Below, one piece after another: positions 26,311 through 52,316 of a DNA stretch of 64,000 nucleotides. Where the stretch lies: the NCBI GenBank assembly GCA_950097015.1, contig CATNEN010000002.1, positions 2,914,001 to 2,978,000 of the forward strand, written 5' to 3'. Position 1 is the first letter of the stretch; every line of letters begins with the position of its first letter. Below the pieces are notes generated by a model. The model had not been told where the DNA came from and searched no databases. It worked only from the letters and a program-made list of their open reading frames with translations. The stretch is from Macrostomum hystrix (Eukaryota > Animalia > Platyhelminthes). Made by a program: the position numbers and the translations under genes.

Positions 26311-28650
26311 TTAATCGTGCATGTATGAATAAATAGGTACAATAGCAAAAATGCGATCGGCACGCCATGGAACAAGCATACAGGGTGCGAGAAAACTTCT
26401 GCGTTGAACTGAGATATATGGAGCAGGTAATGAAGTGTCATATAGGTTGTATGATAAAAAACTACTCTTTGACTGTATCGTCCAGAACACCAATCCATTC
26501 GGTCTCAGAATTGTCCAGTGGAGTAGCGTCGACAGACTGGAAGGAGTCGCGAATAACTGGACCGAGGGGTTGCAGAATTCGTACAAAAGCTGTTTCGTCG
26601 GTTAATTCTTCAACCATACAAATTTACTTCGTGGATAAAAAAACAAGAGTTAGTGCTGTTGTGGAAATCTTCTGTGGTAGTGCGGTACAATGATTTGACG
26701 CTGTCGCCCATTACGAGTCTCGCGTCCTTGACAATTAGTTGTAGAGATTTATGTACAGCTTTGGAAGAGGATGCTGACAATGCACGGATCAGTTGCTTCG
26801 ACTGAATACACTTCTCTACAACTTGATTAGCGTAGCCTGTAGTACCAGTTACATACTTCTTATAGCGACCAATTGCGCTCTCGAACCCATACATTGACGC
26901 TACCGAAATCGGACCGTATTGCTCATAGAGTGATGGAAAGTGGGACAAAAAATGGAAATTAATGCGACACAATCTCTCACCATATAGAGAAGGTAATGTC
27001 TGCAGGATTTTTCTTCGCAAATAAGCGATTCTTTCACACGCAGAACGTTGATGAAACAGTAGACCGTACAAAATGCTAAGAGAAGCGATGAAGCAACGCA
27101 ATATATTCTTGGAAGTCGATCGAAGCAGTATTGGAACAGCAGCATACAGGAAGAAATTCCTATAATGTTTTCCCTTCCACATGGACTGCTTAAGTAGCGG
27201 TGGTGGCAAAGAAAAACCTTTGGGTGTTCTGCAGGTTGATAAGACTCTACCGATGAAAGAAATTGCGGAGACAGAAAGAGAGCAAGGCAAACCACTTTCA
27301 ATCATTTTGCTAATAACTGACTTGCACTGACCTTCAAAAAAGGCATGCATAGGATCAATAATATTGCCCTCCGGAAACTTCACACATTGTAGCATTGCGG
27401 CTTTGCCATAGACGCCGAACACTGCAACTCCACGACGCATGGCAGACTCAGCATGTTCCATGTGCAGTGGAGAAGATCGGAGAGGATACTCCGTCAGAAA
27501 ATTATCATTGCTGGTGATAAAAATGCGAACATGACCTTTCTCTGAGACCTTTAGTGTCTCTCCAGGATGCCAGCATTTTGGACAACCAAAATATCCATTG
27601 AATTGGTGAAACTTGAAAATTTGTGCTAACGCTGGTAGATCGGCCATGAAAAACGAAAAGTGAATGATGAAAGGACGTTGTCCGTGAGTAAACTTTCTGC
27701 TCAGACGTGAAAATAAAATAGGCCAATTTTTTCAAAGTGCGGCTTTTTCGCGCTCTTGATCATCGCAAGCAAGACAATATTCGCAAATGCCTGTCTATCG
27801 GTAGGACTTATGTTTAGGATCTGAGCCTGAACAGGCCAAAAAGACTTCTCAGTGGTTCTCACGAATTTTGCCCCATCAGCACAGACGAGGAGATGGACAT
27901 GGCTGCAATCGTCGGAAGACCTCTGCAACCGTTCATCAAAAGCCGATGCACTGTTAAGAACGTCGCTTCCAGGATTCTTTAACAAATGGTCTTCGTATTC
28001 GATAAATTGAGCAAACATTCTACTCATGATATCTTTGACTTGAGTGCTGAGCGATGGTACAACAACTTGACTGCGATGTGCATGCGCACCTGCGACACAT
28101 TCTGTGGGGCAAATCTGACAAACATAAAACTTTTCCACCGCTACAATACTACCTAGATCGATAGAGAAACGCTTGTCCATTATTCGATGGAGCGCCTGCA
28201 CGTTTGGTGGCAAGTTGTTTCCATTTCCCATAATTTTCTGCAGTCGAAGATTTACATCTAGCGCGGCATCACTGACACCGGACATGACGGCCCACAGGTA
28301 CGTCAGTGCAGCACGAGTAGCATCATCTTCGATTCCAGTAACGAATGGTACTTGAGGGTCACCCTCATCCTCAAAGCAGTCAGCAGCACCGCAATTACCG
28401 GCAGATGGGGTGTCATTTGGCACACCAGTCCTCATTCAGTGCATCGCCTTGGGTGCCACAAGCAGAAAGGAGCTCACTTGGTGTGCCGCCCTCATCAATT
28501 GCATCGCTCTGGGTGCCACAAGCAGAAAGAAGATTACTTGGTGTGCCGCCCTCATCAATTGCATCGCTCTGGGTGCCACCAGCAGAAAAGGGTGTGCCAC
28601 CCTCATCATCGGCGTCACTCTGCATGGTTTCCACCAACAGAATGGATGTC
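26311..28650 (-). pseudogene. Second, divergent CMC/EnSpm-type transposase (frameshifted)
   Basis: LLVCADGAKF..SFWPVQAQILNI, MADLPALA..FNGYFGCPKC, IDPMHAFFEG, WKGKHYRNF, INFHFLSH, SMYGFESAIG. Element ends not found. Confidence 0.88.
28430..28620. repeat. 60-bp coding tandem repeat x3 (GTQSDAIDEGGTP) in the transposase N-terminal region
   Basis: GCATCGC(C/T)(T/C)TGGGTGCCAC at 28441, 28501 and 28561. Confidence 0.9.
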
Positions 28651-31321: not shown

Positions 31322-33265
31322 CTACTTCCTGATTCTGAGCAGCCTCACCTTCTTCTTCGACCCTAACACCATCAGCAACTTACCCGTGCACAGAGGATGG
31401 GATAGGGGGCAGGGTTGGAGAGGGCAACGGACTGTCCGACGGCAGGACAACCGCATCACCTGACGCCTCCCCCGCCTCTCATGGCCGACCTCATGGCCGA
31501 CTAGCTCGTGGAGACTCGACCCGGAGCCAACTCGTGATCGCATGTGCCACCTACGAGCGCTCCACAGGCCGATCTCATCGTCGTAGTCGTCATTGCTGTC
31601 TTCTGGCTCGCCGGACGCGTCAGCTGTCAGGGAGTCACCCTTGGGTCTCCTTCCGAGCTTCCGCCGTGCCGTGCTCGCCACCTCCGTCTCACTGCACATC
31701 GAGGCCGGTACCGGGAGCAGGTTGCGCCGATGAACTACCAGCACCTGCTTCCTGGCCTTCTTGGTGTTGCCGTGTCGCCTGATCTTATAGACTGTCTCGC
31801 CCTTGTTCTCGAGCACTACGTAGACCGACTGTCGGGGCCGATGGAACTTGCTGATCTCGCCGGACTCGATCACCCGGTTGTTGAGTAAGACCAGCTGGCC
31901 CGGGCGGAGTAGTTTCGCCTGCGGTCTTTCCTGATAATGCTCCTCTCGCAGCACCTGATATCTTTCGAGCTTGTCCCGGGCACAGTCAACAGCCTGGTTG
32001 ATGCGCTCCTGGAACTGTCGGAGGTAGTCTGGAAGGTCTGCGTATTCAGCCAGTGCAGTCAACGTGTTGTCCACGGACAGCCGGTACTCCCGTCCGAAGA
32101 CCAGGAAATACGGCGTGTACCCGGTCACAGGATGGACACTGGTGCGCAACGCGATTAAGCACGCGGGCAGCATCAGGTCCCAATCCCTGTGATCCTTTTC
32201 CAACAAACACGTGAGCACTGACTTAATCTGGCGATTCAGATTCTCAACCTGGCCATTGCTGGCTGGGTTGTAGGGACACGTGTGCGTGTGACGGATTCCG
32301 TACAGCTTACAGAAGTCTTCAAACTCTGCGCTCATGAAGTTCGTCCCCTGGTCCGTGTGCAACCAAGCTGGCGCACCGTACTCGGGAATAAACCGATCTA
32401 GCAGCAGTTTGAGCACTGTCTTGGTCTTCTGGTTCCTCATCGGGTAGGCGAACGGGTACTTCGATGTTGCATCACACAGGGTTAGGATGTACCGATGTCC
32501 TCGGGCGCTTAGTTGTGACAAAGGCCCGATCACGTCGGCATGCACCCTTCCCAATACCTCACACACTGGAAAGTTCTGCGGTGGGACCACCTCCTTCCGC
32601 CTCGACTTACTCTCCAGGCATGTCCTGCAACGCGCAACGTACCCCGTTGCCTCCGTCCAGAGACCGGGTCTCCAGAACCTGTCTCTCACTCTCTGCACCG
32701 TCTTGGACTGGCCGAGATGACCCGCCAAATGTGAGTCATGCAAGGCCTCAAAGACGCGCGAGTCTAATGCTTTCGGTAGCACCGGTCGCGGCGGCCGGTT
32801 ATCATCAAAGTCAATGACGAGTAACCCGTCGCGCACCTCCAGCTCCTCAAATGCACCCAGCAGGTCTCTGACCTCCTTCGGCATCTGGAGTCGCTGATCG
32901 AACCTGGGCTTTTCCCTTCCTGAGAGCTTCAGTTCCGTCAGGTAACGGATTGCCGGGTCTTGGTGCTGAGCTTCTAGCAACTCGACCTGGCTAACCGGCA
33001 CCCTCAGGAACTCTGTCACCACTGCTCTTACCGGAGGCAGCTCTCCACTGTCTTCGTCCTCCTTGTCCTTGGACCCAGGAGCCCTGGCAGCAGGGGGTGT
33101 CCTTGACAGGCGAGACTGGTCGCAACGAGTCTGACAACTCCCCTCCACCTCTGCTCCCTGTCCCACGGAGAGACCAACAGTCGGCAGGCAGGACTGGCTG
33201 CAACGAGCGGGCACCTTTTCCTTTACCTCTGAGCCTTCCGCCACCACCTGAGTCTGCACCTGTGC
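31322..33265 (-). pseudogene. pol: Gypsy pol fragment with an uninterrupted integrase reading frame
   Basis: HHCC, VHADVIGP, TDQGTNF, QVENLN and a GPY/F-like region in one frame. The upstream pol is missing. Confidence 0.92.
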
Positions 33266-35532
33266 CGAACCAATCATGCATGTTTTATCTAAAACATTTG
33301 ATAGACTCAACAAAGGCCCACGGTAGGATGTAGTTAGTCCTTGTGCGAGTGAAAGCGTTAGAAAAGTAAATTAAATTTGCAAATTTTCAAATTTTTACAG
33401 GCATGTATTATCCTTGTATACACGGATCATGCATGTTTTTACAATGAAAAAAGGTCCTAGGTACTAGATCACTGCTAATGTTTAAAATCGAAAGAAAATA
33501 AACTTCCACTTCTTAGAGTTTGCAATAAGACGCTCATCGAAATTGTATTCGTTCTCAGCGCTAAGAATAGCTCGTCTGTCAGCACATGCAGCGTGACCGG
33601 ATACGTCAGACGTTATGCCATCTCCAGCAGCCTTATAAAGGCGCAAGAGCGACACTTGTCTGCCAAATTCATTAATAGGTGCTCCCGACCAAGAAGGTGA
33701 ATTCTGCTGGGCCATACTTTAACGATTCGCTTAAGAAACATGAAATCTGGGTTGGTAGACAATATTGGACTGACGTTCGTAATGAGAGATTTTATCTTGT
33801 CAAAGAAACCACAAGTGACTCGGAGTCTCACTCCTTTAAGTGAGTGAAACCAGGCCCAAACGGGGTAGCATCCATATCGGAATCCTTTCGGACTAGCATG
33901 CGATCGGCAAAAGTAATAAAGGCGACCTATGCACAATAAAAAACGTGTCAAGACATTGTATTCCCCATGCCTGCCTGGCACTTCAAAATCAAAATCTGTG
34001 TGGCACTCCAAATCTAAACTGTTGTATGGTCGTCTGAGGTCTTTAGCGCTGGTCCGCTCCTTTAGCGCTCCAGCACAATTTGAGTAAGACAGCCTAAGGC
34101 TTAGGAACGCATCGTCGTTGGGTCGCAATCCCGTCATTATTCCGTGTAGCTGTTGACGCCCATGAAGGCCGGAAACGTTAGTCAATGCTTGGCCCAGCTG
34201 TTACGCCGCTGGCAATCTACGAGCTGTAAGCTGTAAGCTCGTAAGCTGCGGCTTCATGCAAACTGCATTTTGACGCTTTCGGCAATTTCATTAAATTATT
34301 TGTCAATTTGCCTTAATCGTTTCCGGTGATCTTGTGTGCGTGCTTTCAGCTTGATTGGCTTGATTGGCTCGCTTCGCTCGCTCTTTCTCGCTATCTACTA
34401 TCTATTGCCAGGACCTGCACCGGAGCGGTTACGAAAATTAGATTTCTCGGTAGTTGCACGCACTCTTTTGCACTGCTTGAGTAGTCTGATTTTTGTACGG
34501 CATGGCTGGTTCCAGCAGGTAGTTCCTCTGGATAAAAGCGCTTACCGCGCCCATTGACTTTCCAGCTGCCTTAATCGTTTCCGGTGATCTTGTTTGCGTG
34601 CTTTCAGCTTGATTGGCTGCGGCAAGCTACTATCTACTACCATGTGGCGGATTCCACAATGGCGCTGCTTCCCCATCCCAGACGTACTCAATTATACGCG
34701 AGACAAGGTGATTTTCTGCTTGCCTCAGCCACAACTCTGACTCTCGCTGCACAAACCGGGGCGATGCAGCATGCTGGTGGGTAAATTGACGTTTCTTGAC
34801 GTTATAAATAGCCTCATCGCTGGACAACACCTCATCAGCATATCAGGGCGGCCAGTTCTTTTCTTCCTAAGAATATGTTCATAGGCTGTAGTGACAGTCG
34901 ACAATCGGTAGAGCACAAAGATTGTTTATACTTTTTTCTCTGACCAATGCCATCCATCTTGGGCTGCTTCATTAGAACATAACGATAGAAACGGAAGCAC
35001 TCGTGGGCTTTATCCGTGGTGTAGAACTTGCATCTAGGCATACTGCAGTGTGAATAACTGCAGCAAAAACATTGGCACAGAAGGAGTTGCAGCTGCAACT
35101 CTTTCATTGCACGCCTAAGTCATACTGACTGACTCAGACTGAGTGTCCAAATCACAACTCGTTGGATCTTTAGCAACAGAAGCCAGATTATCTTCATTCG
35201 CAAAGCGAGTGGCAATTAACGTACAAACATAGTTTGGCATTCACGTTTGACGGTTGGAACCATTCCACTTAACGGCCATCGACCAAAGCAAGTCCATAGG
35301 CTTGCCAGAATCACCAGTCGTGCGTAGCTAAAATGTCCGATTCAGATATTCTGCCAGCAAACTTGCAATACCCGGTATGTGGGGGTAGTTAAAGCGAAAA
35401 TATTTTTAACAGCTGCTGCAGCAGAAATAGCGGCCAATCCACTGCATAATTAAGAGTAATGCTAATCGCAAGCACGCTGTTTGGCTCCCGCAAAAAAGTG
35501 TTTTCTTGATTCAAAGCCCATTTATAGTGACG

Positions 35533-37200: not shown

Positions 37201-37505
37201 AGCAGAGAGTGGAGAAAGCAGAGAGTGGAGAAAGCAGAGAGTGGAGAAAGCAGAGAGTGGAGAAAGCAGAGAGTGGAGAAAGCAGAGAGTGGAGAAAGCA
37301 TAGAGTGGAGAAAGCAGAGAGTGGAGAAAGCAGAGAGTGGAGAAAGCAGAGAGTGGAGAAAGCATAGAATGGAGAAAGCAGAGAGTGGAGAAAGCAGAGA
37401 GTGAAGAAAGCAGAGAGTGGAGAAAGCATAGAATGGAGAAAGCAGAGAGTGGAGAAAGCAGAGAGTGGAGAAAGCAGAGAGTGGAGAAAGCAGAGAGTGG
37501 AGACA
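37201..37505. repeat. 16-bp minisatellite AGCAGAGAGTGGAGAA, ~19 copies
   Basis: Direct reading; period 16. Confidence 0.95.
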
Positions 37506-37525
37506 GCTGATTGTGGAGACTGGAG

Positions 37526-38430
37526 AAATGGCTGAGAGGCTGGATGGACAAAATGACCTCAAATGGCTGAGAGGCTGGCCGGACAAAATGACCGTAAATG
37601 GCTGAGAGGCTGGCCGGACAAAATGACTTTAAATGGCTGAGAGGCTGGCCGGACAAAATGACCGTAAATGGCTGAGAGGCTGGATGGACAAAATGACCTT
37701 AAATGGCTGAGAGGCTGGATGGACAAAATGACCTCAAATGGCTGAGAGGCTGGCCGGATAAAATGACCGTAAATGGCTGAGAGGCTGGCCGGACAAAATG
37801 ACTTTAAATGGCTGAGAGGCTGGATGGACAAAATGACCGTAAATGGCTGAGAGGCTGGATGGACAAAATGACCGTAAATGGCTGAGAGGCTGGATGGACA
37901 AAATGACCGTAAATGGCTGAGAGGCTGGATGGACAAAATGACCTTAAATGGCTGAGAGGCTGGATGGACAAAATGACCTCAAATGGCTGAGAGGCTGGCC
38001 GGACAAAATGACCGTAAATGGCTGAGAGGCTGGCCGGACAAAATGACCGTAAATGGCTGAGAGGCTGGCCGGACAAAATGACCGTAAATGGCTGAGAGGC
38101 TGGCCGGACAAAATGACCGTAAATGGCTGAGAGGCTGGCCGGACAAAATGACTTTAAATGGCTGAGAGGCTGGCCGGACAAAATGACCGTAAATGGCTGA
38201 GAGGCTGGCCGGACAAAATGACCTTAAATGGCTGAGAGGCTGGCCGGACAAAATGACCGTAAATGGCTGAGAGGCTGGATGGACAAAATGAACTTAAATG
38301 GCTGAGAGGCTGGATGGACAAAATGACCTTAAATGGCTGAGAGGCTGGATGGACAAAATGACCTCAAATGGCTGAGAGGCTGGATGGACAAAATGACCTT
38401 AAATGGTTGAGAGGCTGGCCGGACAAAATG
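37526..38430. repeat. 35-bp minisatellite AAATGGCTGAGAGGCTGG(CC/AT)GGACAAAATGAC(CGT/CTT/CTC/TTT), ~26 copies
   Basis: Direct reading; period 35 with two variable positions. Confidence 0.95.
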
Positions 38431-38817: not shown

Positions 38818-39120
38818 CTAGTCACTTAAAAAGTGCTCGAGGCGCTCCAATCTCGACATTTTTGAGGCCAGCTTCAGCTTCTTCATGCCAACGATGAAGG
38901 CCTGGCTTTTAGCCTCGAAGCCAATGCCATGATTTGCCGCGGGCCGCACGTTGTCGACCCAATCCCGGGTTGGAGGCTCGTCCAAAAACTGCACATGGAC
39001 GCGGTTGCCACGTGTAGCTAATTTGCCTCTTGGCGGCAAGCAGACAATTGCAGGCCACCACTGCTCGCCATCGCCTGGCCAAAACGCAACCACCAAGTCA
39101 CCCGGCTGCCAGGCGTTCTG
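38818..39120 (-). other. PWWP domain at the C-terminus of the recombinase gene
   Basis: PGDLV...WWP.IV...RVHVQF(L)DEPPTRDWV closely follows the MSH6-type PWWP pattern (PGDLVW...PWWPCLV...RVHVQFFDDSPTRGWV). Confidence 0.9.
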
Positions 39121-42100
39121 ATTGCTTGGCGCAGTGTTGGCGCTGCGCTCCGACAAGGCGGTGGTGGCGCTGCACTCCGACGCGGCGGCGGTGGTGGCGC
39201 TGCGCTCCGACGCGGCGGCGCAGCGGTTTGAAGCGGGGGCGGGGGCGGTGGCGCGGCGCTTCGATGCAGCGGCGGTGGTAGCGCTGCGCTCCGAGAAGCC
39301 GGCGGTGGTGGCGCTGCGCTTTGATGCGGGGGCGGTGGCGCTGCGCTTCGACGCGGCGGCGGTGGTGGCGCTGCGCTTCGACGCGGCGGCGGTGGTGGCG
39401 CTGCGCTCCGACGCGGCGGCGGTGGCGCCGCACTCCAACGCGGCGGCGGTGGTGGCGCTGCGCTCCGACGCGGCGGCGCAGCGGTTTGAAGCGGGGGCGG
39501 GGGCGGTGGCGCGGCGCTTCGATGCAGCGGCGGTGGTAGCGCTGCGCTCCGAGAAGCCGGCGGTGGTGGCGCTGCGCTTTGATGCGGGGGCGGTGGCGCT
39601 GCGCTTCGATGCGGAGGCGGCGCTGCGGTTTGAAGCAGGGGCGGTGGCGCAGCGCTTCGACGCGGCGGCGGTGGTGGCGCTGCGCTTCGACGCGGCGGCG
39701 GTGGTGGCGCTGCGCTTCGACGCGGCGGCGGTGGTGGCGCTGCGCTCCGACGCGGCGGCGGTCGTGGTGCTGCGCTCCGAGGCGGTGGTGGCGCTGCACT
39801 CCGACGCGGCGGCGGTGGTAGCGCTGCGCTCCGACGCGGCGGCGCAGCGGTTTGAAGCGGGGGCGGTGGCGCAGCACTCCAACGCGGCGGCGGTCGTGGC
39901 GCTGAGCTCCGACGCAGCGGCGGAAGCTGCGTGCCGCGAGCGCTGCGTCGATGCCCGGGGCTGAATCGGCTGACGTGTGGCCTAATTTTGGTAATGAAAA
40001 ATTTCCTGCGTTCATTAATTTTCGTTTGTTTAACTAGTCTTAGAAAATAAATAAGGAATTATCTATTAAGAAGCATGCAGCATAAAATACAGCATAAAGC
40101 AAAGAGAAATTCTCAGCATAGCTCACCCGTCCGGCGCTGTCCTTCATTATTTGCTGCAGAACAGCGCTACCGGCCTGCCGGTACCAGTCCGTGTGGACCT
40201 GGTAAAAATCCCGCGCCACCTGTGGCGTATGATATAGCCGGTCCGCCACAAGTTGCGGGTCCTCGCCCGCCAGTAGTGCCTGAAAAGGAAGATGGCGAAT
40301 TGAAGAAGATAAAACATATTTGTTTTTTACCTACTGAATTTAATAGTTTCAGGTATGATGGGAATCGAATAGACCAGTAGCAGATTTCGGGTGCACAAGG
40401 CGACTCAGAACTGCTACTTCCAAAACTCTCGCCCTCCCCAATTTCTGGTGATTAATAAAAAATGAAGCTGAATGGTCTATGTAACGTAGTCTATGTATGA
40501 AAAGCATCTTACGATAGCTACTCACTTTCGTTTCGACAAAGATTCGAAACTCGGTGCAAGTGACACTTGCCAGCAGCGGACTAAAACGCTCTCGGTGTTC
40601 TCGAAACATGCCTTCAAATCCGCCGTACTTAAACTTGATGAACGGCAGTTTGGCGTCGCCGTCGGTTGGGTTAGCGGCTTCGCGACGTCGCAGCAGCCGC
40701 AGCAGCAGGCTGCGGCACTCGGTCACGTTAACTTTGGACGCGCCGAAGTAGGCACTGGTCTTGTGTTTGGCTACCTGAATAATATCAGTCAAATATATAT
40801 TCAAACTAAGAACTGATGCAATGTTTCTAATGCATTCTAACATATCCCTGTAAACAATTATGCAATCGACCCATTTTCCTCCGCTTCAGTAAAACTCCGC
40901 AAATATGTTTGACAAGGGAAAATAAAACTTATAAGAACAAGCACAAATTATAGATGATTATTTCAAGCTGCTAATATAGAATACACCAACATAATCTTCT
41001 GACATCAACTCCCAGCCCTCTGACATAACTCTGAGCCCTCTTCCAGCCAAGCTCAGAGTTTGGAGTCAGTTGTTGACTAAGTCGCCTGCGGTAAAAGGCA
41101 AATTTAGCCGTGATATTGTAAAATACCGGAGCCCAAAAATATCTGCAGGGTGCAAAATTCGCCTAGATTTTTAGGTATAGCTTAAATTTCCTTATTGCCG
41201 AATTTTCGCAGAGTGCGAAGACAGATCATGCATATTTACTACGTTCCCTGTTTTCATCATAAGGAATTCACTACTACATCGAGTTTACAACTAATGCAAA
41301 CTGACAAAATAATTTCAAGAATATTAAAATGTGCGAAAGCATTTCCTGAAATATGCAACTTCTAGGAATTTAAAAATTATTACCTACTATCCTAATTTCA
41401 GACAATTTTTTTAACTCAATAAAGGGCTCACCCATAGCTCCTTCGATGGGTCATTGGCCCACTGCCGAACTTCTTGCAGAGTGGCGTTGCAAGCCACGTC
41501 TTGTCGGTTGGCGTTGCCGTCGCCGAAGCAAACAACCATTCCGAAAGCCAGCATCTCGTTGTCGGAAATTTTGTCAGCCTCGGCATCATCGGTGATGGTC
41601 TCGGCCAGCAGGTGAGCCTTCATGGCCATCAGTTCGGCCACCTGGTCGTCGCTGAGGAGGCGAGCATGCTTTTTGTCCTGGGATATAGGGTTAGGGTTAG
41701 GTTAGGTTAAACGAGCAAAGAGTTTTTTGCTTTATAAGTTTTCAGGTGAACTCCAATTTACCTCAAACATGTTAAAATAGGTATTGTTTGTGACTATAGC
41801 CTTATACCGGCTTTCTAGGACAGGACACTGGCCCGCTAAAATTAGTAACTCAAAACCAAGGCTAAAACTCCTGCTAAAATTCTTAGCATATGTACGACTT
41901 TTCCCCTAAAACTCTTGTATCACAACTAATAATGCAAAAATGCACATTTAAGAGCAGCATGGAGTGACAAACTAGAATATATCTAAACAAAATACACAGA
42001 TGCTATGAATTTTACTCACCTTTAGTGCGGCATTGTAGATTTTCTTTCGCTTGTTATAGTATTGTGTCCACTTTGGACAACAAGCACAAAAGCTTGTGAG

Positions 42101-45100
42101 GTGGTCGCGAAGACCATTGGCATTAATGCTGCTCAGCCTGTTCATGGTCAGGTAGTCGCCCAACTTTTGGAGACTGCCGACCATTTCCTTCAGGACCCCG
42201 AAGCTCACAGTGGTCAGGGTTTCTGAGATCTATATAAATTGTGGGGATATAAAGCTTCAGTATTAAACTGTGGCAGTAACAATTTATAGCTAGGGGTAGG
42301 CCCTATACCAAGCTTGCAGTAAAAATATGATGTCTTGGAATTACCAAAGACGCATAGAAAAACACTAGACTGATAAAAAGAATTTTAAATCGTTGTATAA
42401 TCAGTTAAATTATATAAAGTATGTCTAAGTTATTTAAATAAAATGGCAATGCAATGTAGGCCTATTTTGCAAACAGCTCAAGTGCATAATATATAACTCA
42501 CCAAATCTCGGTGTGACTCATGAATAACATCTTCAATTTCATTGGCTCCAACCAGGTCCACCAGTCGGTTCATGTATGAGCCAACCTTCCTGATAGTTGA
42601 TTCGGCCAGTCCACCACCCATGGCTCCTTTCAGAGAGTTCTGCATTTTGTTTTGTGTTTCTGTTCTTCAAGTTGAGCTTTAGGTAGGCATAGCTAGGCCT
42701 AACAGCTAAAGGAAGTATAAAACTTAGTAAAACAAAAACTGAAGCTCTATAAAATTTATATATGGGCTGAACAAGTCCTACTCCTTTACAATAAGACTAA
42801 GTCTAAATATAGCCAAAGATAGTTCATTTTTTTAGAATCATAGCACTTACCAGGTATGGAATCAGAGCAGGAATGAAACTGCTGGTTTCACTCGCAAGTT
42901 TCTTGTCTTCAGCAATCTGAGAACAGTGAGGTGGAAAAATATATAGCTATGCTGTTTTTCATATCAGCCAGTGGGTGTACTAGAGAAGTTCAGCATATAT
43001 ACTCATAATCATATACTAGATCAATTCGCTAGCAAGAGAATCACGGACACTGTCAAACAGGTCGGATGAAGCACTATCTAACAAGTTAGAAAGAACGCCT
43101 TCTAATAGATGAGAAGGAAAACTGTTGAGAGCTGAGACTCAATTAAGAATAGTATAAAAGAAAGAGCCAGCGCGTAAAACTATCGGCCCTTACCTGATGG
43201 GCTTCTTCGATCAACGCTTGCACGTTGACCGGCTTGTCTACAGGTCGAACAAGCTCGTCAGAATGCCAGCGTGCTTTGTGCTTCCGAAAATTGTCGGCAG
43301 TGCCCGGAATGATGAGTGAACAGAGCTGGCAAAAGTTGCCGTCTGGCACGGCTGCTGAAGCGCTGCCGTCTGGCACCGCTCCTGAAGCGCTGCCGTCTGG
43401 CAGAGCTGTTGCCGGTCTGTGCCAGTTCAAGGGGTCATTTAAAAATAAATCAGAAGTTCTTTGTTTTCACTCTTTGCAATAGGACAAGTAAGCCAGTTTC
43501 AGTCAACCAATTTTATAGAACATGGCAAAACTAACAAGGGTCAAGGGAACAAAAACTATACTATATATGGAAGCACATGTGTGATCGCGGAACAGGGGAG
43601 AGTGGAGACGTATGAGAGTGGAGACGGGGGAGAGTGGAGACGTGTGAGAGTGGAGACGGGAGAGAGTGGAGACTGGGGAGAGTGGAGACGGGGGAGAGTG
43701 GAGACGGGAGAGTGGAGACGGGGGAGAGTGGAGACGGGGGAGAGTGGATACAGGGGAGAGTGGAGACGGGGGAGATTGGAGACGGGAGAGTGGAGACAGG
43801 GCAGAGTGGAGACGGGGGAGAGTGGAGACGAGAGAGTGGAGACGGAGGAGAGTGGAGACGAGAGAGTGGAGACGGAGGAGAGTGGAGACGGGGGAGAGTG
43901 GAGACGGGGGAGAGTGGAGACTGGGGAGAGTGGAGACGGGGGAGAGTGGAGACGAGAGAGTGGAGACGGAGGAGAGTGGAGACGGGGGAGATTGGAGACG
44001 GGAGAGTGGAGACAGGGCAGAGTGGAGACGGGGGAGAGTGGAGACTGGGGAGAGTGGAGACGGGGGAGAGTGGAGACGGGAGAGTGGAGACAGGGCAGAG
44101 TGGAGACAGGGGAGAGTGGAGACGGGGGAGAGTGGAGACGGGGGAGAGTGGAGACGAGAGAGTGGAGACGGAGGAGAGTGGAGACGGGGGAGATTGGAGA
44201 CGGGAGAGTGGAGACAGGGCAGAGTGGAGACGGGGGAGTGGAGACAGGGCAGAGTGGATCTGATAAGCAATATGTAACGAAAATCATGCAAATAAAATAA
44301 AGACGTTCGAATTACCTCCTTCCGGCCAGCTTCAATTTGCGCTCCTGGTCCTTCACTTTGATAAAAATCCGCAGACACTTGTGCACCTTTGAAGTATCGT
44401 TCTGATACTTTTGGAGAAAGCTGTCGTATATATGACGGTGGCAGTCTCTTACATGCTGCGCGAATCTGGAGTTGCGCACAATGCAGTTGGGTCGATATGG
44501 ACACGTGTAGCAACGCCCGGCTCTCTTGCTCTCTTCTTCGTCGTTGGCTCTGGCTCGCCGGGTTTTCGAGCTGCTTGCTGGCGGGGCTGACGTGCTGCTG
44601 GCTGCAGCTTGCGTATTTGGCGAGATGCTTGCTGGTGGGACTAATGTGCTACTGGCTGTGGCCTGCGTGGTCGGCGAGCAGATGGCTGGCCAGGCTGCAG
44701 CACTGCTATGACTAGCACGGTAGCTGCCGTTGACCTCGTAGCCGTAGCCATTGCCGCTGTTCTCGCCGTTTGCGCCGTTGCCGCCGTTGACAGCATAGCT
44801 GTAGCTGCCGTTGCCGCTGTAGCCGCTGTAGCCGCTGTAGCCGCCGTAGCCGCTGTAGCTGCCGTTGCCGCTGTAGCTGCCGTAGCCGCTGTAGCTGCCG
44901 TAGCCGCTGTAGCTGCCGTTGCCGCTGTAGCTGCCGTTGCCGCTGTAGCTGCCGTTGCCGCTGTAGCTGCCGTTGCCGCTGTAGCTGCCGTTGCCGCTGT
45001 AGCTGCCGTTGCCGCTGTAGCTGCCGTTGCCGCTGTAGCTGCCGTAGCCGCTGTAACCACCGTTGCCGCTGTAGCTGCCGTTGCCGCTGTAGCTGCCGTT

Positions 45101-45550
45101 GCCGCTGTAGCTGCCGTTGCCACTGTAGCCGTTGTTGCCGCTGTAGCCGCTGTAACCGGTAGTCACACTGCCGTTGGTGCCGTTGCAGCCGCTGCCGTTG
45201 TTCACGCCGTTAGCGACGTTGCAGTCGTTGTCGCCGTTGTCCGACACGCCGCTGCTGGCGCTTGATGGCGATCCGGCAGCGCCGCTGCTGGCGCTTGATG
45301 GCGATCCGGCAGCGCCGCTGCTGGCGCTTGATGGCGATCCGGCAGCGCCGCTGCTGGCGCTTGATGGCGATCCGGCAGCGCCGCTGCTGGCGCTTGATGG
45401 CGATCCGGCAGCGCCGCAGAGCTGGGTGCGAACTGCCTCAGCAATCGAAATCGGTGTATCCAAAGTCGCTGAGGCAAGGCTCTCCATGAGTGGGCCTGGC
45501 TTGTCAAACTCAAATTGTAAGCACTTGCTTAAACCTAATTCGAAGTTCAT
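38818..45550 (-). CDS. 9-exon gene, ~1227 aa: low-complexity repeats, 2 C2H2-like fingers, tyrosine recombinase (core-binding and catalytic), repeats, PWWP (Crypton-like)
   Basis: Exons 45550-44316, 43416-43194, 42916-42851, 42639-42502, 42229-42020, 41677-41432, 40774-40526, 40279-40127 and 39981-38818. Every intron is GT..AG and the phases match; total 3684 nt = 1228 codons with no internal stop. YR motifs GNANRQD, VAKHKT, TEFR, ADRLYHT...DFYQ. PWWP: PGDLVVAFWPGDGEQWWPAIV...VHVQFLDEPPTRDWV. Confidence 0.85.
39127..39930. repeat. GC-rich ~30-bp coding minisatellite (ASERSATTAA) with a 258-bp higher-order duplication
   Basis: GGCGGTGGTGGCGCTGCGCT units; blocks repeat at 39219 and 39477. Confidence 0.9.
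43594..44258. repeat. 13/15-bp G-rich minisatellite (GGGGAGAGTGGAGAC and variants) in intron 1 of the recombinase gene
   Basis: Direct reading; lies between donor 44315 and acceptor 43417. Confidence 0.92.
44805..45415. repeat. Coding repeats in exon 1: 18-bp (SGNGSY) array and 30-bp (GAAGSPSSAS) x5
   Basis: GCCGCTGTAGCTGCCGTT units at ~44810-45130; GGCGCTTGATGGCGATCCGGCAGCGCCGCT units at ~45258-45415. Confidence 0.92.
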
Positions 45551-46128: not shown

Positions 46129-46667
46129 AAGCTAAGTTCTATTCACTGTTATGCAGTTATAGCACTGTGCTGTGTTAGAGAGTGAAAAAGCTAAGTTCTA
46201 TTTGCTGTTATGCAGTTATAGCACTGTGCTGTGTTAGAGAGTGAAAAAGCTAAGTTCTATTCGCTGTTATGCAGTTATAGCACTGTGCTGTGTTAGAGAG
46301 TGAAAAAGCTAAGTTCTATTCGCTGTTATGCAGTTATAGCACTGTGCTGTGTTAGAGAGTGAAAAAGCTAAGTTCTATTCGCTGTTATGCAGTTATAGCA
46401 CTGTGCTGTGTTAGAGAGTGAAAAAGCTAAGTTCTATTCGCTGTTATGCAGTTATAGCACTGTGCTGTGTTAGAGAGTGAAAAAGCTAAGTTCTATTCGC
46501 TGTTATGCAGTTATAGCACTGTGCTGTGTTAGAGAGTGAAAAAGCTAAGTTCTATTCGCTGTTATGCAGTTATAGCACTGTGCTGTGTTAGAGAGTGAAA
46601 AAGCTAAGTTCTATTCGCTGTTATGCAGTTATAGCACTGTGCTGTGTTAGAGAGTGAAAAAGCTAAG
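46129..46667. repeat. 59-bp tandem array, 9 nearly identical copies plus 8 bp, between divergently oriented genes
   Basis: AAGCTAAGTTCTATTCGCTGTTATGCAGTTATAGCACTGTGCTGTGTTAGAGAGTGAAA; only units 1-2 vary. Confidence 0.96.
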
Positions 46668-47386: not shown

Positions 47387-47700
47387 ATGGCCAGCTTGTC
47401 GTGCCCGCTATGTACAAGTACTCGTATTGTTCATAGCCTCAAGGACAACGTTGAAAGACATATTAGGAATATGCATGGCCAAGATCCGCAGCCCGTCATC
47501 GAGTACGCGAAGTGGTCTAAAAAACCAGATATTCTTCTTTGTCGACTCTGTATATATTTCGAGAAGAATCTTAATAAGCATTACAAGCACAAGCATGCGA
47601 GCGAATTTGCAAAGTTTAAAGCTGCGTTTTCTGGCACCAAGGCAACAAAAGCAAGCCGACAGTCTGCTGTTTCGTATTTATCAGCACTTCGCACTTCGCA
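47387..47700 (+). pseudogene. Truncated zinc-finger paralog (2 C2H2-like fingers), cut off by the 124/126-bp array
   Basis: CPLC...RHIRNMH and CRLC...KHYKHKH, then VSYLSALRTS, which resembles the start of the core-binding region (IPYLNSLKG in the spliced gene) just before the array begins. Confidence 0.55.
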
Positions 47701-49034
47701 TGCGTCATCTGTGCAGCTGTGTATATCTGCCCCATCTATAGTGTCATTTCTCAGTCTTCTATTTGATTCTGTATATAGAAGGCGCCGCTTCAAGACAGTT
47801 AGAAACTGCTGAAATAGCAGGCCGCATGCGTCATCTGTGCAGCTGTGTATATCTGCCCCATCTATAGTGTCATTTCTCAGTCTTCTATTTGATTCTGTAT
47901 ATAGAAGGCGCCGCTTCAAGACAGTTAGAAACTGCTGAAATAGCAGGCCGCATGCGTCATCTGTGCAGCTGTGTATATCTGCCCCATCTAGTGTCATTTC
48001 TGAGTCTTCTATTTGATTCTGTATATAGAAGGCGCCGCTTCAAGTCAGTTAGAAACTGCTGAAATAGCAGGCCGCATGCGTCATCTGTGCAGCTGTGTAT
48101 ATCTGCCCCATCTAGTGTCATTTCTGAGTCTTCTATTTGATTCTGTATATAGAAGGCGCTGCTTCAAGACAGTTAGAAACTGCTGAAATAGCAGGCCGCA
48201 TGCGTCATCTGTGCAGCTGTGTATATCTGCCCCATCTAGTGTCATTTCTTAGTCTTCTATTTGATTCTGTATATAGAAGGCGCCGCTTCAAGACAGTTAG
48301 AAACTGCTGAAATAGCAGGCCGCATGCGTCATCTGTGCAGCTGTGTATATCTGCCCCATCTATAGTGTCATTTCTGAGTCTTCTATTTGATTCTGTATAT
48401 AGAAGGCGCCGCTTCAAGACAGTTAGAAACTGCTGAAATAGCAGGCCGCATGCGTCATCTGTGCAGCTGTGTATATCTGCCCCATCTATAGTGTCATTTC
48501 TGAGTCTTCTATTTGATTCTGTATATAGAAGGCGCCGCTTCAAGACAGTTAGAAACTGCTGAAATAGCAGGCCGCATGCGTCATCTGTGCAGCTGTGTAT
48601 ATCTGCCCCATCTAGTGTCATTTCTGAGTCTTCTATTTGATTCTGTATATAGAAGGCGCCGCTTCAAGTCAGTTAGAAACTGCTGAAATAGCAGGCCGCA
48701 TGCGTCATCTGTGCAGCTGTGTATATCTGCCCCATCTAGTGTCATTTCTGAGTCTTCTATTTGATTCTGTATATAGAAGGCGCTGCTTCAAGACAGTTAG
48801 AAACTGCTGAAATAGCAGGCCGCATGCGTCATCTGTGCAGCTGTGTATATCTGCCCCATCTAGTGTCATTTCTGAGTCTTCTATTTGATTCTGTATATAG
48901 AAGGCGCCGCTTCAAGACAGTTAGAAACTGCTGAAATAGCAGGCCGCATGCGTCATCTGTGCAGCTGTGTATATCTGCCCCATCTAGTGTCATTTCTGAG
49001 TCTTCTATTTGATTCTGTATATAGAAGGCGCCGC
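47698..49034 (+). repeat. 124/126-bp tandem array, ~10.7 copies
   Basis: Unit starts at 47698, 47824, 47950, 48074, 48198, 48322, 48448, 48574, 48698, 48822 and 48946; an AT indel accounts for 124 vs 126. Confidence 0.96.
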
Positions 49035-49685: not shown

Positions 49686-52316
49686 ATGGAAAAATCCTTC
49701 ATTGAAAAACTTCTTCAATGGGAGAAATGGACCTCCAGCAAAGTCCAGCAGCCCGCCACCGTCCAGCAGCCCGCCACCGTCCAGCAGCCCGCCACCGTCC
49801 AGCAGCCCGCCACCGTCCAACAGCCCGCCACCGTCCAACAGCCCGCCACCGTCCAACAGCCCGCTACCGTCCAGCAGCCCGCCACCGTCCAACAGCTCGC
49901 CACCGTCCAACAGCCCGCCACCGTCCAACAGCCTGCCGCCGTTGAGCCGAAGAAGATGCGGGCCGGGCAAGAGTACATCTGCCCTTTCGGCAATTGCTTG
50001 CCAATAAAAAAGTCCCGCTTCAGCGAGCACCTAAAAAGATCCCACGTGGCTGTGCTAGAGAGCACAAAGCAGCAGCTAGCAGCAACCGGAATTTCATCTG
50101 AAGCTGCGCTTCAAAAAGAGGCCTTAAAAGCTGTGCGTGCGGCAGTTAAGCTGCACACCCATCAGCTGACTGCCAGCCCGATGCCGGAGATGGCGCAGCA
50201 GTGCCACATCTGCGGCGAGTGGCGGAATAATCCGAATCTATTATCCAGCCACTTGCGCAACAGCCATCCTGTCGCTGTCAGAGCGGCAAAACAACAGAAG
50301 CTGGCTGACGCCAGGTTAAAAGTGCCGGCCAGAGCGGTGGTGGCCGAGCATCCTTCAGCCGCTGATGTTGAGGCCCTGTGCGTCTTCCTAGCGAGCTCGC
50401 TCGGCGGACGCAGAAAACCGGCTACGGTCCGGGAAATCCGGTGCTATCTGAAACGGCTGATGCAGCGCCTCGACATAGTCAGCTTTGAGCAGCTGATCGG
50501 CGAGGATCGGCGTGGCGCGGTAAGCGCCTACTTGGACAGCCTGACATACTCCATGCTGAAGCAGACAGTTTCCGCCCTTGAGAAGGTCGGAAACTTTCTG
50601 ATTTCGGCGCGCTACCAGCGCATCTTCGATGGTGGGCTGCAGCAGCAGCTCACCTCGTACCGGCAGGCCACCAAAAATTGGACGGCGAGCTCGAGCTCGT
50701 CGGCTGCTGCTAGCGCCGACCTGCCTGCTGCTGGCGCCGACCTGCCTGCTGCTGGCGCCGACCTGCCTGCTGCTGGCGCCGACATGCCTACTGCTGGCGC
50801 CGACCTGTCTGCTGCTGGCGCCGACCTGCCTGCTACTGGCGCCGACATGCCTACTGCTGGCGACGACCTGCCTGCTGCTGGCGCCGACATGCCTACTGCT
50901 GGCGCCGACCTGCCTGCCTGTAGCGCCGACCTGCCTGCCGCCGCTACTACGCTTCTAGAATTTTCATTTAGCTCGGACAACCATAACGGATTATTAGATG
51001 AATTATACGAGAATATTTACGGCACTGACGATGCTAGAGCTACAGATGCCTCCGCTTCCGCCGTCCTACCTGGCGCCGACCTGCCTGCTGCTGGCGCCGA
51101 CCTGCCTGCTGCTGGCGCCGACCTGCCTGCTGCTGGCGCCGAAATGCCTACTGCTGGCGCCGACCTTTCTGCTGCTGGCGCCGACATGCCTGCTGCTGGC
51201 GCCGACATGCCTACTGCTGGTGCCGACCTGCCTGCTGCTAGCGCCGACCTGCCTGCTACTGGCGCCGACCTGTCTGCTGCTGGCGCCGACCTGCCTGCTG
51301 CTGGCGCCGACATGCCTACTGCTGGCGCCGACCTGTCTGCTGCTGGCGCCGACCTGCCTGCTACTGGCGCCGACATGCCTACTGCTGGCGCCGACATGCC
51401 TACTGCTGGCGCCGACCTGCCTGCTGCTGGCGCCGACATGCCTACTGCTGGCGCCGACCTGCCTGCCTGTAGCGCCGACCTGCCTGCCGCCGCTACTACG
51501 CTTCTAGAATTTTCATTTAGCTCGGACAACCATAACGGATTATTAGATGAATTATACGAGAATATTTACGGCACTGACGATGCTAGAGCTACAGATGCCT
51601 CCGCTTCCGCCGTCCTACCTGGCGCCGACCTGCCTGCTGCTGGCGCCGACCTGCCTGCTGCTGGCGCCGACCTGCCTGCTGCTGGCGCCGAAATGCCTAC
51701 TGCTGGCGCCGACCTTTCTGCTGCTGGCGCCGACATGCCTGCTGCTGGCGCCGACATGCCTACTGCTGGCGCCGACCTGCCTGCTGCTAGCGCCGACCTG
51801 CCTGCTACTGGCGCCGACCTGTCTGCTGCTGGCGCCGACCTGTCTGCTGCTGGCGCCGACCTGTCTGCTGCTGGCGCCGACCTGCCTGCTGCTGGCGCTG
51901 AAGTCGACTCCGCCAAGCCGCCGGGTAACCGCTTGGCTCGAAAGCGACGTCCAGAGTTCAGCGCCAGCACCAGCGCCGCTAGTCCAGCGAGCAAGCGGCC
52001 AGAAGTTGAGCGGCAAGAAGTTCAGCCAGGCTGCCTTGTTCTCGGCTACTGGCCAACGGACGGCGAAAACTGGTGGCCGGCAATGGTTTGCCTACCCAGC
52101 CACGGTTCGAGCTGCACAAAAGGCATTTGCACTCTAAAAATTCATGTGCAATTTTTCGATAAACCGCCGTCGAGTGCCTGGCTCCACCGGTGGCAGCTTG
52201 TAAGCGGAGCAGAGCCGACTCCAAACAATGCCTCCAAAAAGCTCCGCCAAGCCTACGAACAAATGGCGAAGGCCAGCAAACTCGAAATTGAGTCTCGCTT
52301 GGACAGATTTTTATAA
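49686..52316 (+). CDS. Intronless 876-aa paralog: VQQPAT repeats, 2 C2H2 fingers, YR core-binding-like domain, AGADLP repeats, PWWP; no catalytic domain
   Basis: AGQEYICPFGNC...SRFSEHLKRSH matches AGRCYTCPYRPNC...SRFAQHVRDCH. FLASSLGGRRKPATVREIRCYLKRL matches YLNSLKGAMGGGLAESTIRKVGSYMNRL. PGCLVLGYWPTDGENWWPAMV...IHVQFFDKPPSSAWL is a PWWP. Confidence 0.85.
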   Translation: MEKSFIEKLLQWEKWTSSKVQQPATVQQPATVQQPATVQQPATVQQPATVQQPATVQQPATVQQPATVQQLATVQQPATVQQPAAVEPKKMRAGQEYICPFGNCLPIKKSRFSEHLKRSHVAVLESTKQQLAATGISSEAALQKEALKAVRAAVKLHTHQLTASPMPEMAQQCHICGEWRNNPNLLSSHLRNSHPVAVRAAKQQKLADARLKVPARAVVAEHPSAADVEALCVFLASSLGGRRKPATVREIRCYLKRLMQRLDIVSFEQLIGEDRRGAVSAYLDSLTYSMLKQTVSALEKVGNFLISARYQRIFDGGLQQQLTSYRQATKNWTASSSSSAAASADLPAAGADLPAAGADLPAAGADMPTAGADLSAAGADLPATGADMPTAGDDLPAAGADMPTAGADLPACSADLPAAATTLLEFSFSSDNHNGLLDELYENIYGTDDARATDASASAVLPGADLPAAGADLPAAGADLPAAGAEMPTAGADLSAAGADMPAAGADMPTAGADLPAASADLPATGADLSAAGADLPAAGADMPTAGADLSAAGADLPATGADMPTAGADMPTAGADLPAAGADMPTAGADLPACSADLPAAATTLLEFSFSSDNHNGLLDELYENIYGTDDARATDASASAVLPGADLPAAGADLPAAGADLPAAGAEMPTAGADLSAAGADMPAAGADMPTAGADLPAASADLPATGADLSAAGADLSAAGADLSAAGADLPAAGAEVDSAKPPGNRLARKRRPEFSASTSAASPASKRPEVERQEVQPGCLVLGYWPTDGENWWPAMVCLPSHGSSCTKGICTLKIHVQFFDKPPSSAWLHRWQLVSGAEPTPNNASKKLRQAYEQMAKASKLEIESRLDRFL
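50710..51900. repeat. 18-bp coding repeats (CTGGCGCCGACCTGCCTG) with a 549-bp internal duplication
   Basis: The unique block TTLLEFSFSSDNHNGLLDELYENIYGTDD occurs twice, 549 bp apart. Confidence 0.92.

Follow-up and report, generated by a model that had tools for sequence, protein, structure and literature searches.

Does the flatworm Macrostomum hystrix possess a tyrosine recombinase that carries its own chromatin reader and, if so, does the gene belong to a mobile element or to the host? The question is raised by a locus within a stretch of 64,000 nucleotides (nt) from this organism (GenBank assembly GCA_950097015.1, contig CATNEN010000002.1, positions 2,914,001 to 2,978,000 of the forward strand), which is referred to as the window and is numbered from its first letter. 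For positions 38818-45550 of the window, a first-pass annotation had proposed a spliced gene for a Crypton-like tyrosine recombinase that is fused to C2H2 zinc fingers and ends in a PWWP domain. We hold, with about even confidence, that the locus is an intact nine-exon gene of a Crypton-like recombinase family with a PWWP tail. The evidence is given below for the gene model, for the PWWP domain, for the presumed recombinase and for the type of family to which the gene may belong.

Structure of the spliced gene

On the minus strand, from 45550 down to 38818, nine exons can be joined via eight introns, all of which have GT-AG boundaries. The spliced frame of 3684 nt comprises 1227 codons plus a stop codon and is free of internal stops, so that the model of the first-pass annotation was reproduced in full. 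The guanine-cytosine (GC) content of the exons is 0.44-0.72, compared to 0.29-0.39 for introns 2-8. Tandem arrays within the exons have, without exception, periods that are a multiple of 3; the array in intron 1 has periods of 16, 46 and 124.

Exon 1 (44316-45550, with the ATG at 45550) carries low-complexity repeats and, at 44438-44512, a first C2H2-like pattern. About 20 in-frame hexapeptides of the GSYSGN/GSYSGY type (44795-45163), preceded by five SGAAGSPSSAS units (45248-45418), make up [G/S]Y[G/S] low complexity that resembles prion-like domains of the FUS type. A second C2H2-like pattern (C-x2-C-x13-H-x4-H, at 43263-43331) is found in exon 2 (43194-43416). Exon 3 (42851-42916) codes for a 22-residue linker and the first helix of a helical N-terminal domain (N-domain), which continues through exons 4 (42639-42502) and 5 (42229-42020); these two exons, including intron 4, span 42020-42639. 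The putative catalytic domain starts in exon 6 (41432-41677), with box I and R682 (41504-41506). It extends through exon 7 (40526-40774), with K711 (40760-40762) and T780-x-x-R783 (R at 40544-40546), to the 51-residue exon 8 (40127-40279), which holds the end of box II with H806 (40229-40231) and Y815 (40202-40204). All residues that had been assigned to catalytic positions were found at these coordinates. Just upstream of the exon 6 acceptor, intron 5 contains a telomere-like run on the minus strand (AACCT AACCT AACCCT AACCCT, about 41690-41715).

The first part of exon 9 (39127-39981) codes for about 285 residues of decapeptide repeats that are rich in Ser, Ala, Thr, Lys and Arg (tandem periods 30, 87 and 258) and probably form a disordered linker. 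As its GC content is 0.72 and other frames are open too, the open reading frame (ORF) by itself is weak evidence for this part. The PWWP domain is encoded by the end of the exon (38818-39126), with the stop codon at 38818-38820. The acceptor of exon 9, which starts at 39981, derives its AG from an in-frame TAG, and any ORF opening behind a TAG would therefore seem to be phase-matched at this point. A nearer AG, with an exon start at 40005 (24 nt upstream of 39981), would bring a stop 8 codons later and thus a protein of 847 residues without a PWWP domain. The possibility that the PWWP exon merely reflects a convenient choice of AG was considered and rejected on the basis of a transcript contig across the junction and of a paralog, both described below.

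Six of the eight junctions are found in transcripts of a close copy

RNA contigs from four runs were compared with window positions 39850-43560, a range that lies between exon 1 and the PWWP region and is free of the long tandem arrays. The spliced contigs, assigned to "organism A", are 90-97% like the window and thus stem from a relative or from a paralogous copy, not demonstrably from the window locus. The sole contig with 100% identity (organism B, 42537-42781) is unspliced. In the expressed copy, the joints of intron 3 (42639|42851) and intron 4 (42229|42502) are exact in three runs each. The joint of intron 5 (41677|42020) is exact in run X3, with loose ends in runs X1 and X4; that of intron 6 (40774|41432) is exact in two runs (X1 and X4), and that of intron 7 (40279|40526) in run X4. 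For intron 8, an X4 contig follows the window as far as 39982 and then has 28 loose letters; 25 of these 28 agree with the plus strand from 40128 onward, whereas 7 of 28 agree with the unspliced continuation. We conclude that the X4 junction is 40127|39981. Six of the eight junctions are thus confirmed in RNA of a close copy, including the one that attaches the PWWP exon.

The upstream part of the model fares less well. Among the contigs over 39850-43560, none supports the junction of intron 1 or of intron 2, and exon 2 is not covered. Contigs that are spliced at introns 3 and 4 continue past the exon 3 acceptor as far as 43022, so that intron 2 appears to be retained, and another contig passes through the exon 2 donor. 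Of the eight junctions proposed in the first-pass annotation, those of introns 3-8 are therefore backed by exact joints or, for intron 8, by the X4 loose end; those of introns 1 and 2, where contigs read through, are not. Unspliced contigs also exist for introns 5-8, which indicates that the libraries hold pre-mRNA or DNA.

Two structural differences between the copies or species became evident from the same comparison. In the expressed copy, at least 147 nt are inserted into intron 2 (at 43021/43022), and a 308-nt stretch of the window in intron 6 (41079-41388) is replaced by 26 letters.

Among the 40 of 114 differences between window and RNA copy that were listed, 28 codons are affected, 14 of them by synonymous and 14 by non-synonymous changes. 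In exons 4-7, 14 synonymously changed codons are found versus 9 that are changed non-synonymously, and in exon 3 the respective numbers are 0 and 5. The codon of R682 differs only synonymously (CGA to CGG). We take this as a sign of purifying selection on exons 4-7, which is a rough one because it is drawn from these 40 differences.

The PWWP domain and an intronless paralog

The last 115 residues of the protein match the PWWP domains of MSH6 (2gfu; E-value 1.2e-8) and NSD3 (1.7e-5) in a phmmer search against PDB, in agreement with the first-pass annotation. MSH6 and NSD2/NSD3 provide the best sequence matches, and the block RVHVQF-D--PTR-WV is near-identical to that of MSH6. The Pfam model PF00855 gives 21.8 bits, which is below its cut-off of 25.6. 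Judged by sequence, the domain at the end of the protein is a real PWWP domain.

It differs from the MSH6 domain not only in the sub-cut-off Pfam score but also in the methyl-lysine cage and in a 2-residue insertion. At the positions that form the cage in the PWWP domains of MSH6 and LEDGF, the protein has E-W-F. The Tyr of GYPWWP in MSH6 is replaced by Glu (GEQWWP), with the insertion preceding the Glu; the second Trp is retained, as is the Phe of VQF. The cage thus has two aromatic residues rather than three. The Glu had been pointed out before, and the alignment to MSH6 agrees. An AlphaFold2 model of the domain from a 2-sequence alignment was not usable (mean predicted local distance difference test score, pLDDT, of 43).

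A second member of the family is located head to head with the spliced gene, at a distance of about 4.1 kb. This paralog (49686-52316, plus strand, 876 residues) is intronless and carries two C2H2-like patterns, the N-domain, long repeats and a PWWP domain in a single ORF. Its PWWP domain is over the Pfam cut-off (30.4 bits), has 44% identity to that of the spliced gene (E-value 5e-17) and shares the Glu at the first cage position. The N-domain of the spliced gene is homologous to paralog residues 235-333 (tblastn E-value 2.6e-12). Both C2H2-like patterns are conserved in position: the first finger aligns to paralog residues 87-131 (tblastn E-value 8e-5), and the second one, in exon 2, is collinear with the second finger of the paralog. 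As fingers, N-domain and PWWP domain occur in one ORF of the paralog, these three belong to one protein in this family, independent of any splicing.

The catalytic part is absent from the paralog, which has repeats alone at the corresponding position. Its middle consists of a duplicated block of ADLPAAG-type repeats. Zinc finger matches in Pfam are sub-threshold for the paralog (zf-C2H2_4, E-value 0.077; zf-Di19, 0.029), and none were obtained for the exons of the spliced gene. AlphaFold2, run on the N-domain of the paralog as a single sequence, gave a pLDDT of 44. Between the two genes, a 141-residue ORF (47387-47812, plus strand) has two more C2H2-like patterns (CPLC...HIRNMH and CRLC...HYKHKH) with weak Pfam zinc finger matches only. 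It may be what is left of a third family member, or else an exon of the paralog that lies upstream.

The middle region as a probable tyrosine recombinase

Five of the six catalytic positions of tyrosine recombinases are occupied in the middle region (R682, K711, R783, H806 and Y815). The His of the HxxR motif is replaced by Thr (T780), as had been noted before. The spacing R-29-K-69-T-3-R-23-H-9-Y is close to that of XerD (R-24-K-72-H-3-R-23-H-9-Y).

Further indications came from a search of the language-model Atlas. For exon 8, clusters of PF00589 (Phage_integrase) make up 66 of the best 100 named matches, with a recognition value of 2837 and a top score of 0.95, a score that is reached by about 1 in 100 shuffled proteins. 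For exon 6, the look-alikes, with scores of 0.81-0.87, are DUF3435 (0.87), DUF3504 (0.86), ResT-TelK_cat (protelomerase), Integrase_2, NDC10_II and Phage_integrase. Weak local profile matches fall at the collinear places where they would be expected. The best match of the XerD-family hidden Markov model (HMM) puts the start of the catalytic domain ("LS..QV..L") on XerD 110-123 (insignificant, E-value 0.05-0.5), and the best local hhalign match puts box II on XerD 245-272, with R247 and H270 aligned (insignificant, P 0.6).

A considerable number of results weigh against the assignment. If any residue is allowed at the His position, 1007 of 20000 composition-matched shuffles (5%) show the spaced residue pattern, and 12% show box II alone, so that the pattern by itself is weak. 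Other sets of residues fit as well, for example one that lies 100 residues upstream (R585...R682, W706, Y715). Exons searched singly gave nothing in Pfam, PHROGs, NCBIfam or PDB, and for exon 7 neither a phmmer search of 1.84 billion protein representatives nor the Atlas yielded a match. Searches of metagenomes with exons 7 and 8 were blank. The same holds for word-indexed homology searches with the paralog N-domain and both PWWP domains, which are insensitive. The reference recombinases were XerD, XerC, FimB, FimE, Cre and lambda Int together with 80 relatives of XerD; phage scans for lambda Int and Cre yielded near-identical copies only. Against these E. coli and phage recombinases, neither HMM searches nor hhalign nor our own profile alignment with shuffles gave a significant result, and in the latter z was 0.1-1.3 versus bacterial recombinases. 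Thus, with single exons and with bacterial and phage profiles, statistically significant similarity to any recombinase family was not obtained. For exon 6, Atlas recognition is below the guide value of the tool, and the Atlas matches share 100-147 of 256 features, which is fewer than usual for true family members.

Exons 6 and 8, where boxes I and II are located, independently point to one clan. For this reason we consider it likely, though not proven, that the middle region is a tyrosine recombinase. For the claim of the first-pass annotation, which is weakly supported, the positive signals are the Atlas look-alikes of exons 8 and 6.

Crypton element or host gene

Cryptons are defined by a recombinase with an R-H-R-Y tetrad, by the lack of a reverse transcriptase and by short direct repeats at their ends (Kojima and Jurka 2011, PMC3212892). 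As in these DNA transposons, which often have introns and of which CryptonA elements encode DUF3504, the gene would be a eukaryotic recombinase-only gene with introns: the nine exons showed no further enzyme domain. Common features also include the DUF3504 and DUF3435 look-alikes of exon 6. With CryptonA "Glomhoppers", copies of which vary in intron number and have a repeat-rich location, the gene shares the introns and the repeat-rich setting (PMC13465315). For Glomhoppers, the boundary between active and co-opted copies is unclear (PMC13465315).

There are, however, clear differences. The tetrad reads R682-T780-R783-Y815, so that Thr occupies the place of the Crypton His. Neither terminal repeats between the flanks nor DNA-level copies of the gene region were found in the 64-kb window, where the only diverged protein-level paralog is the one described above. 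Measurable sequence similarity to Cryptons was not obtained with the searches described above. The two papers on CryptonA and Glomhoppers (PMC3212892, PMC13465315) mention neither a C-terminal PWWP domain nor N-terminal C2H2-like fingers. Membership in the Cryptons, as envisaged in the first-pass annotation, is putative.

The gene can also be compared to Crypton-derived host genes, namely ZMYM2/3/4, WOC, QRICH1, KIAA1958, KCTD1 and yeast Ndc10/Gcr1. These combine a recombinase-derived domain with zinc fingers or chromatin modules, are intron-bearing and are expressed. The catalytic Tyr and the second Arg have disappeared from DUF3504 host genes (PMC3212892), whereas the spliced gene retains R, K, R, H and Y, with Tyr815 and Arg783 as the two residues in question. 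None of the host genes has been described with a PWWP domain.

It is thus conceivable, with a probability that we consider smaller than that of a Crypton-like family but still appreciable, that the gene belongs to a fully domesticated, non-mobile host family. In such a family a former Crypton recombinase would serve as a chromatin- or DNA-binding factor, comparable to ZMYM/WOC, KIAA1958 or Ndc10, in which the function would reside in the PWWP domain and the fingers, with catalysis lost or irrelevant. Eight introns together with long in-frame low-complexity regions would fit such a factor, as would the Thr at the tetrad His, the adjacent paralog with fingers, N-domain and PWWP domain but no catalytic domain, and the fact that no element ends were found in the 64-kb window. 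Zinc fingers have been documented as fusion partners of Crypton-derived domains (PMC3212892), and exons of the gene diverge less from the RNA copy than introns do, with half of the listed codon changes being synonymous. Purifying selection, however, is equally expected of an active element, and the retention of both Arg, Lys, the second His and Tyr sets the gene apart from DUF3504 genes, which have lost Tyr and the second Arg (PMC3212892). A much smaller chance is left for a chromatin protein with zinc fingers, an uncharacterized helical core and a PWWP domain, in which the recombinase motif has arisen by chance. This is suggested by the 5% of shuffles that show the pattern and by the further residue sets in the real sequence (R585...R682, W706, Y715), and all conventional sequence searches being blank and all profile alignments insignificant would be in line with it. 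It is harder to reconcile with exons 6 and 8 reaching families of the recombinase clan independently in the Atlas (exon 8 at a score seen for about 1 in 100 shuffles), with the best local profile matches lying at the expected collinear positions and with a spacing that is within a few residues of XerD at five intervals.

Least probable, in our view, is that the main product at the locus lacks the PWWP domain. A protein of 847 residues would result if the 40005 acceptor, 24 nt upstream and 8 codons ahead of a stop, were used or if intron 8 were retained, and the PWWP form would then be minor or absent. Contigs that run unspliced through intron 8 (X1 40076-40279, X3 39996-40179, X4 40034-40155) point in this direction, and the 39981 junction is seen in just one low-depth contig. 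That contig, on the other hand, uses exactly 39981, the paralog carries its PWWP domain in a single ORF, and the frame is open for 1161 nt through to the PWWP domain. Moreover, introns 5-7 are also unspliced in contigs, which is attributable to pre-mRNA or DNA in the libraries.

We thus favour the Crypton-like family, at even confidence, over the domesticated one. According to this preferred reading, the gene would be a member of a lineage-specific, multi-copy family that most likely descends from a Crypton-like DNA element and may still act as one. Its product would consist of a low-complexity head, two C2H2-like fingers, the helical N-domain, a Crypton-type tyrosine-recombinase-like domain, a disordered linker and an MSH6-like PWWP domain, in this order. 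The recombinase would cut and rejoin DNA via Tyr815 and the fingers would supply DNA contact. The PWWP domain would keep the enzyme on nucleosomes and thereby bias its site of action. The recombinase fold, catalysis with Thr in place of the first His, mobility and the reading of a histone mark are what we infer for this protein. It may even be speculated, although we consider this unlikely, that it is an active Crypton-type tyrosine recombinase with its own nucleosome reader. The pocket with Glu and two aromatic residues would then recognize a less methylated state or a different histone feature and thereby direct excision and integration to particular chromatin; the twin without catalytic domain would compete for these sites as a regulator.

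Genomic surroundings

The neighbourhood of the gene is rich in repeats and transposons. Regular tandem arrays flank it on both sides (37201-38430, 46129-46667 and 47697-48621), with units of 16 bp and 35 bp (94% identity), 59 bp (9 copies, 99%) and 126 bp (98%). Downstream of the gene, the minus strand carries an ORF of 663 residues for an integrase of a long terminal repeat retroelement (31322-33313) and two transposase-like ORFs of 345 and 244 residues (26610-28435), all identified from their ORF sequences only. Between this integrase ORF, which is the one nearest to the gene and which we read as being of Gypsy-type origin, and the gene lie 5.5 kb with tandem arrays, and no DNA repeat is common to the ORF and the gene region.

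Chromatin-tethered integration and implications

The first-pass annotation knew of no described fusion of a tyrosine recombinase with a PWWP domain, and none came to light in those parts of the literature that our searches covered. A search for papers that pair "Crypton" with "PWWP" returned none. Among the papers listed for tyrosine recombinases, PWWP and transposons together, no fusion was noticed, and the top-ranked one mentions the recombinase and PWWP separately. Nor was any protein with the architecture fingers-recombinase-PWWP retrieved, although it must be kept in mind that word-indexed searches are insensitive.

Chromatin-tethered integration is known from the chromodomain integrases of Ty3/Gypsy chromoviruses and from the integrase of human immunodeficiency virus (HIV) acting with the PWWP domain of LEDGF/p75. 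The likeness to the protein described here would be that an enzyme which integrates DNA is coupled to a reader of nucleosome marks that biases the choice of target. Those systems, however, use a DDE integrase, whose reader is a chromodomain in one case and a host protein in a chain of its own in the other. In the present protein, as read from sequence and splicing, a putative tyrosine recombinase would share one chain with the PWWP domain.

How mobile elements choose their landing site is a central question, and the solutions known are the chromodomains of Gypsy-type elements and the hijacking of LEDGF by HIV. If true, the presence of both a tyrosine recombinase and a PWWP domain in one chain would add a third solution, independent of these two and found in elements that have been little studied; as an active Crypton-type enzyme, the protein would be the first of DNA transposons known to carry a PWWP domain of its own. 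For chromatin-directed recombinase tools, it could provide a natural template. If the family has been domesticated, it would provide a further case of a recombinase-derived chromatin factor, and one in which nearly all catalytic residues have been kept.

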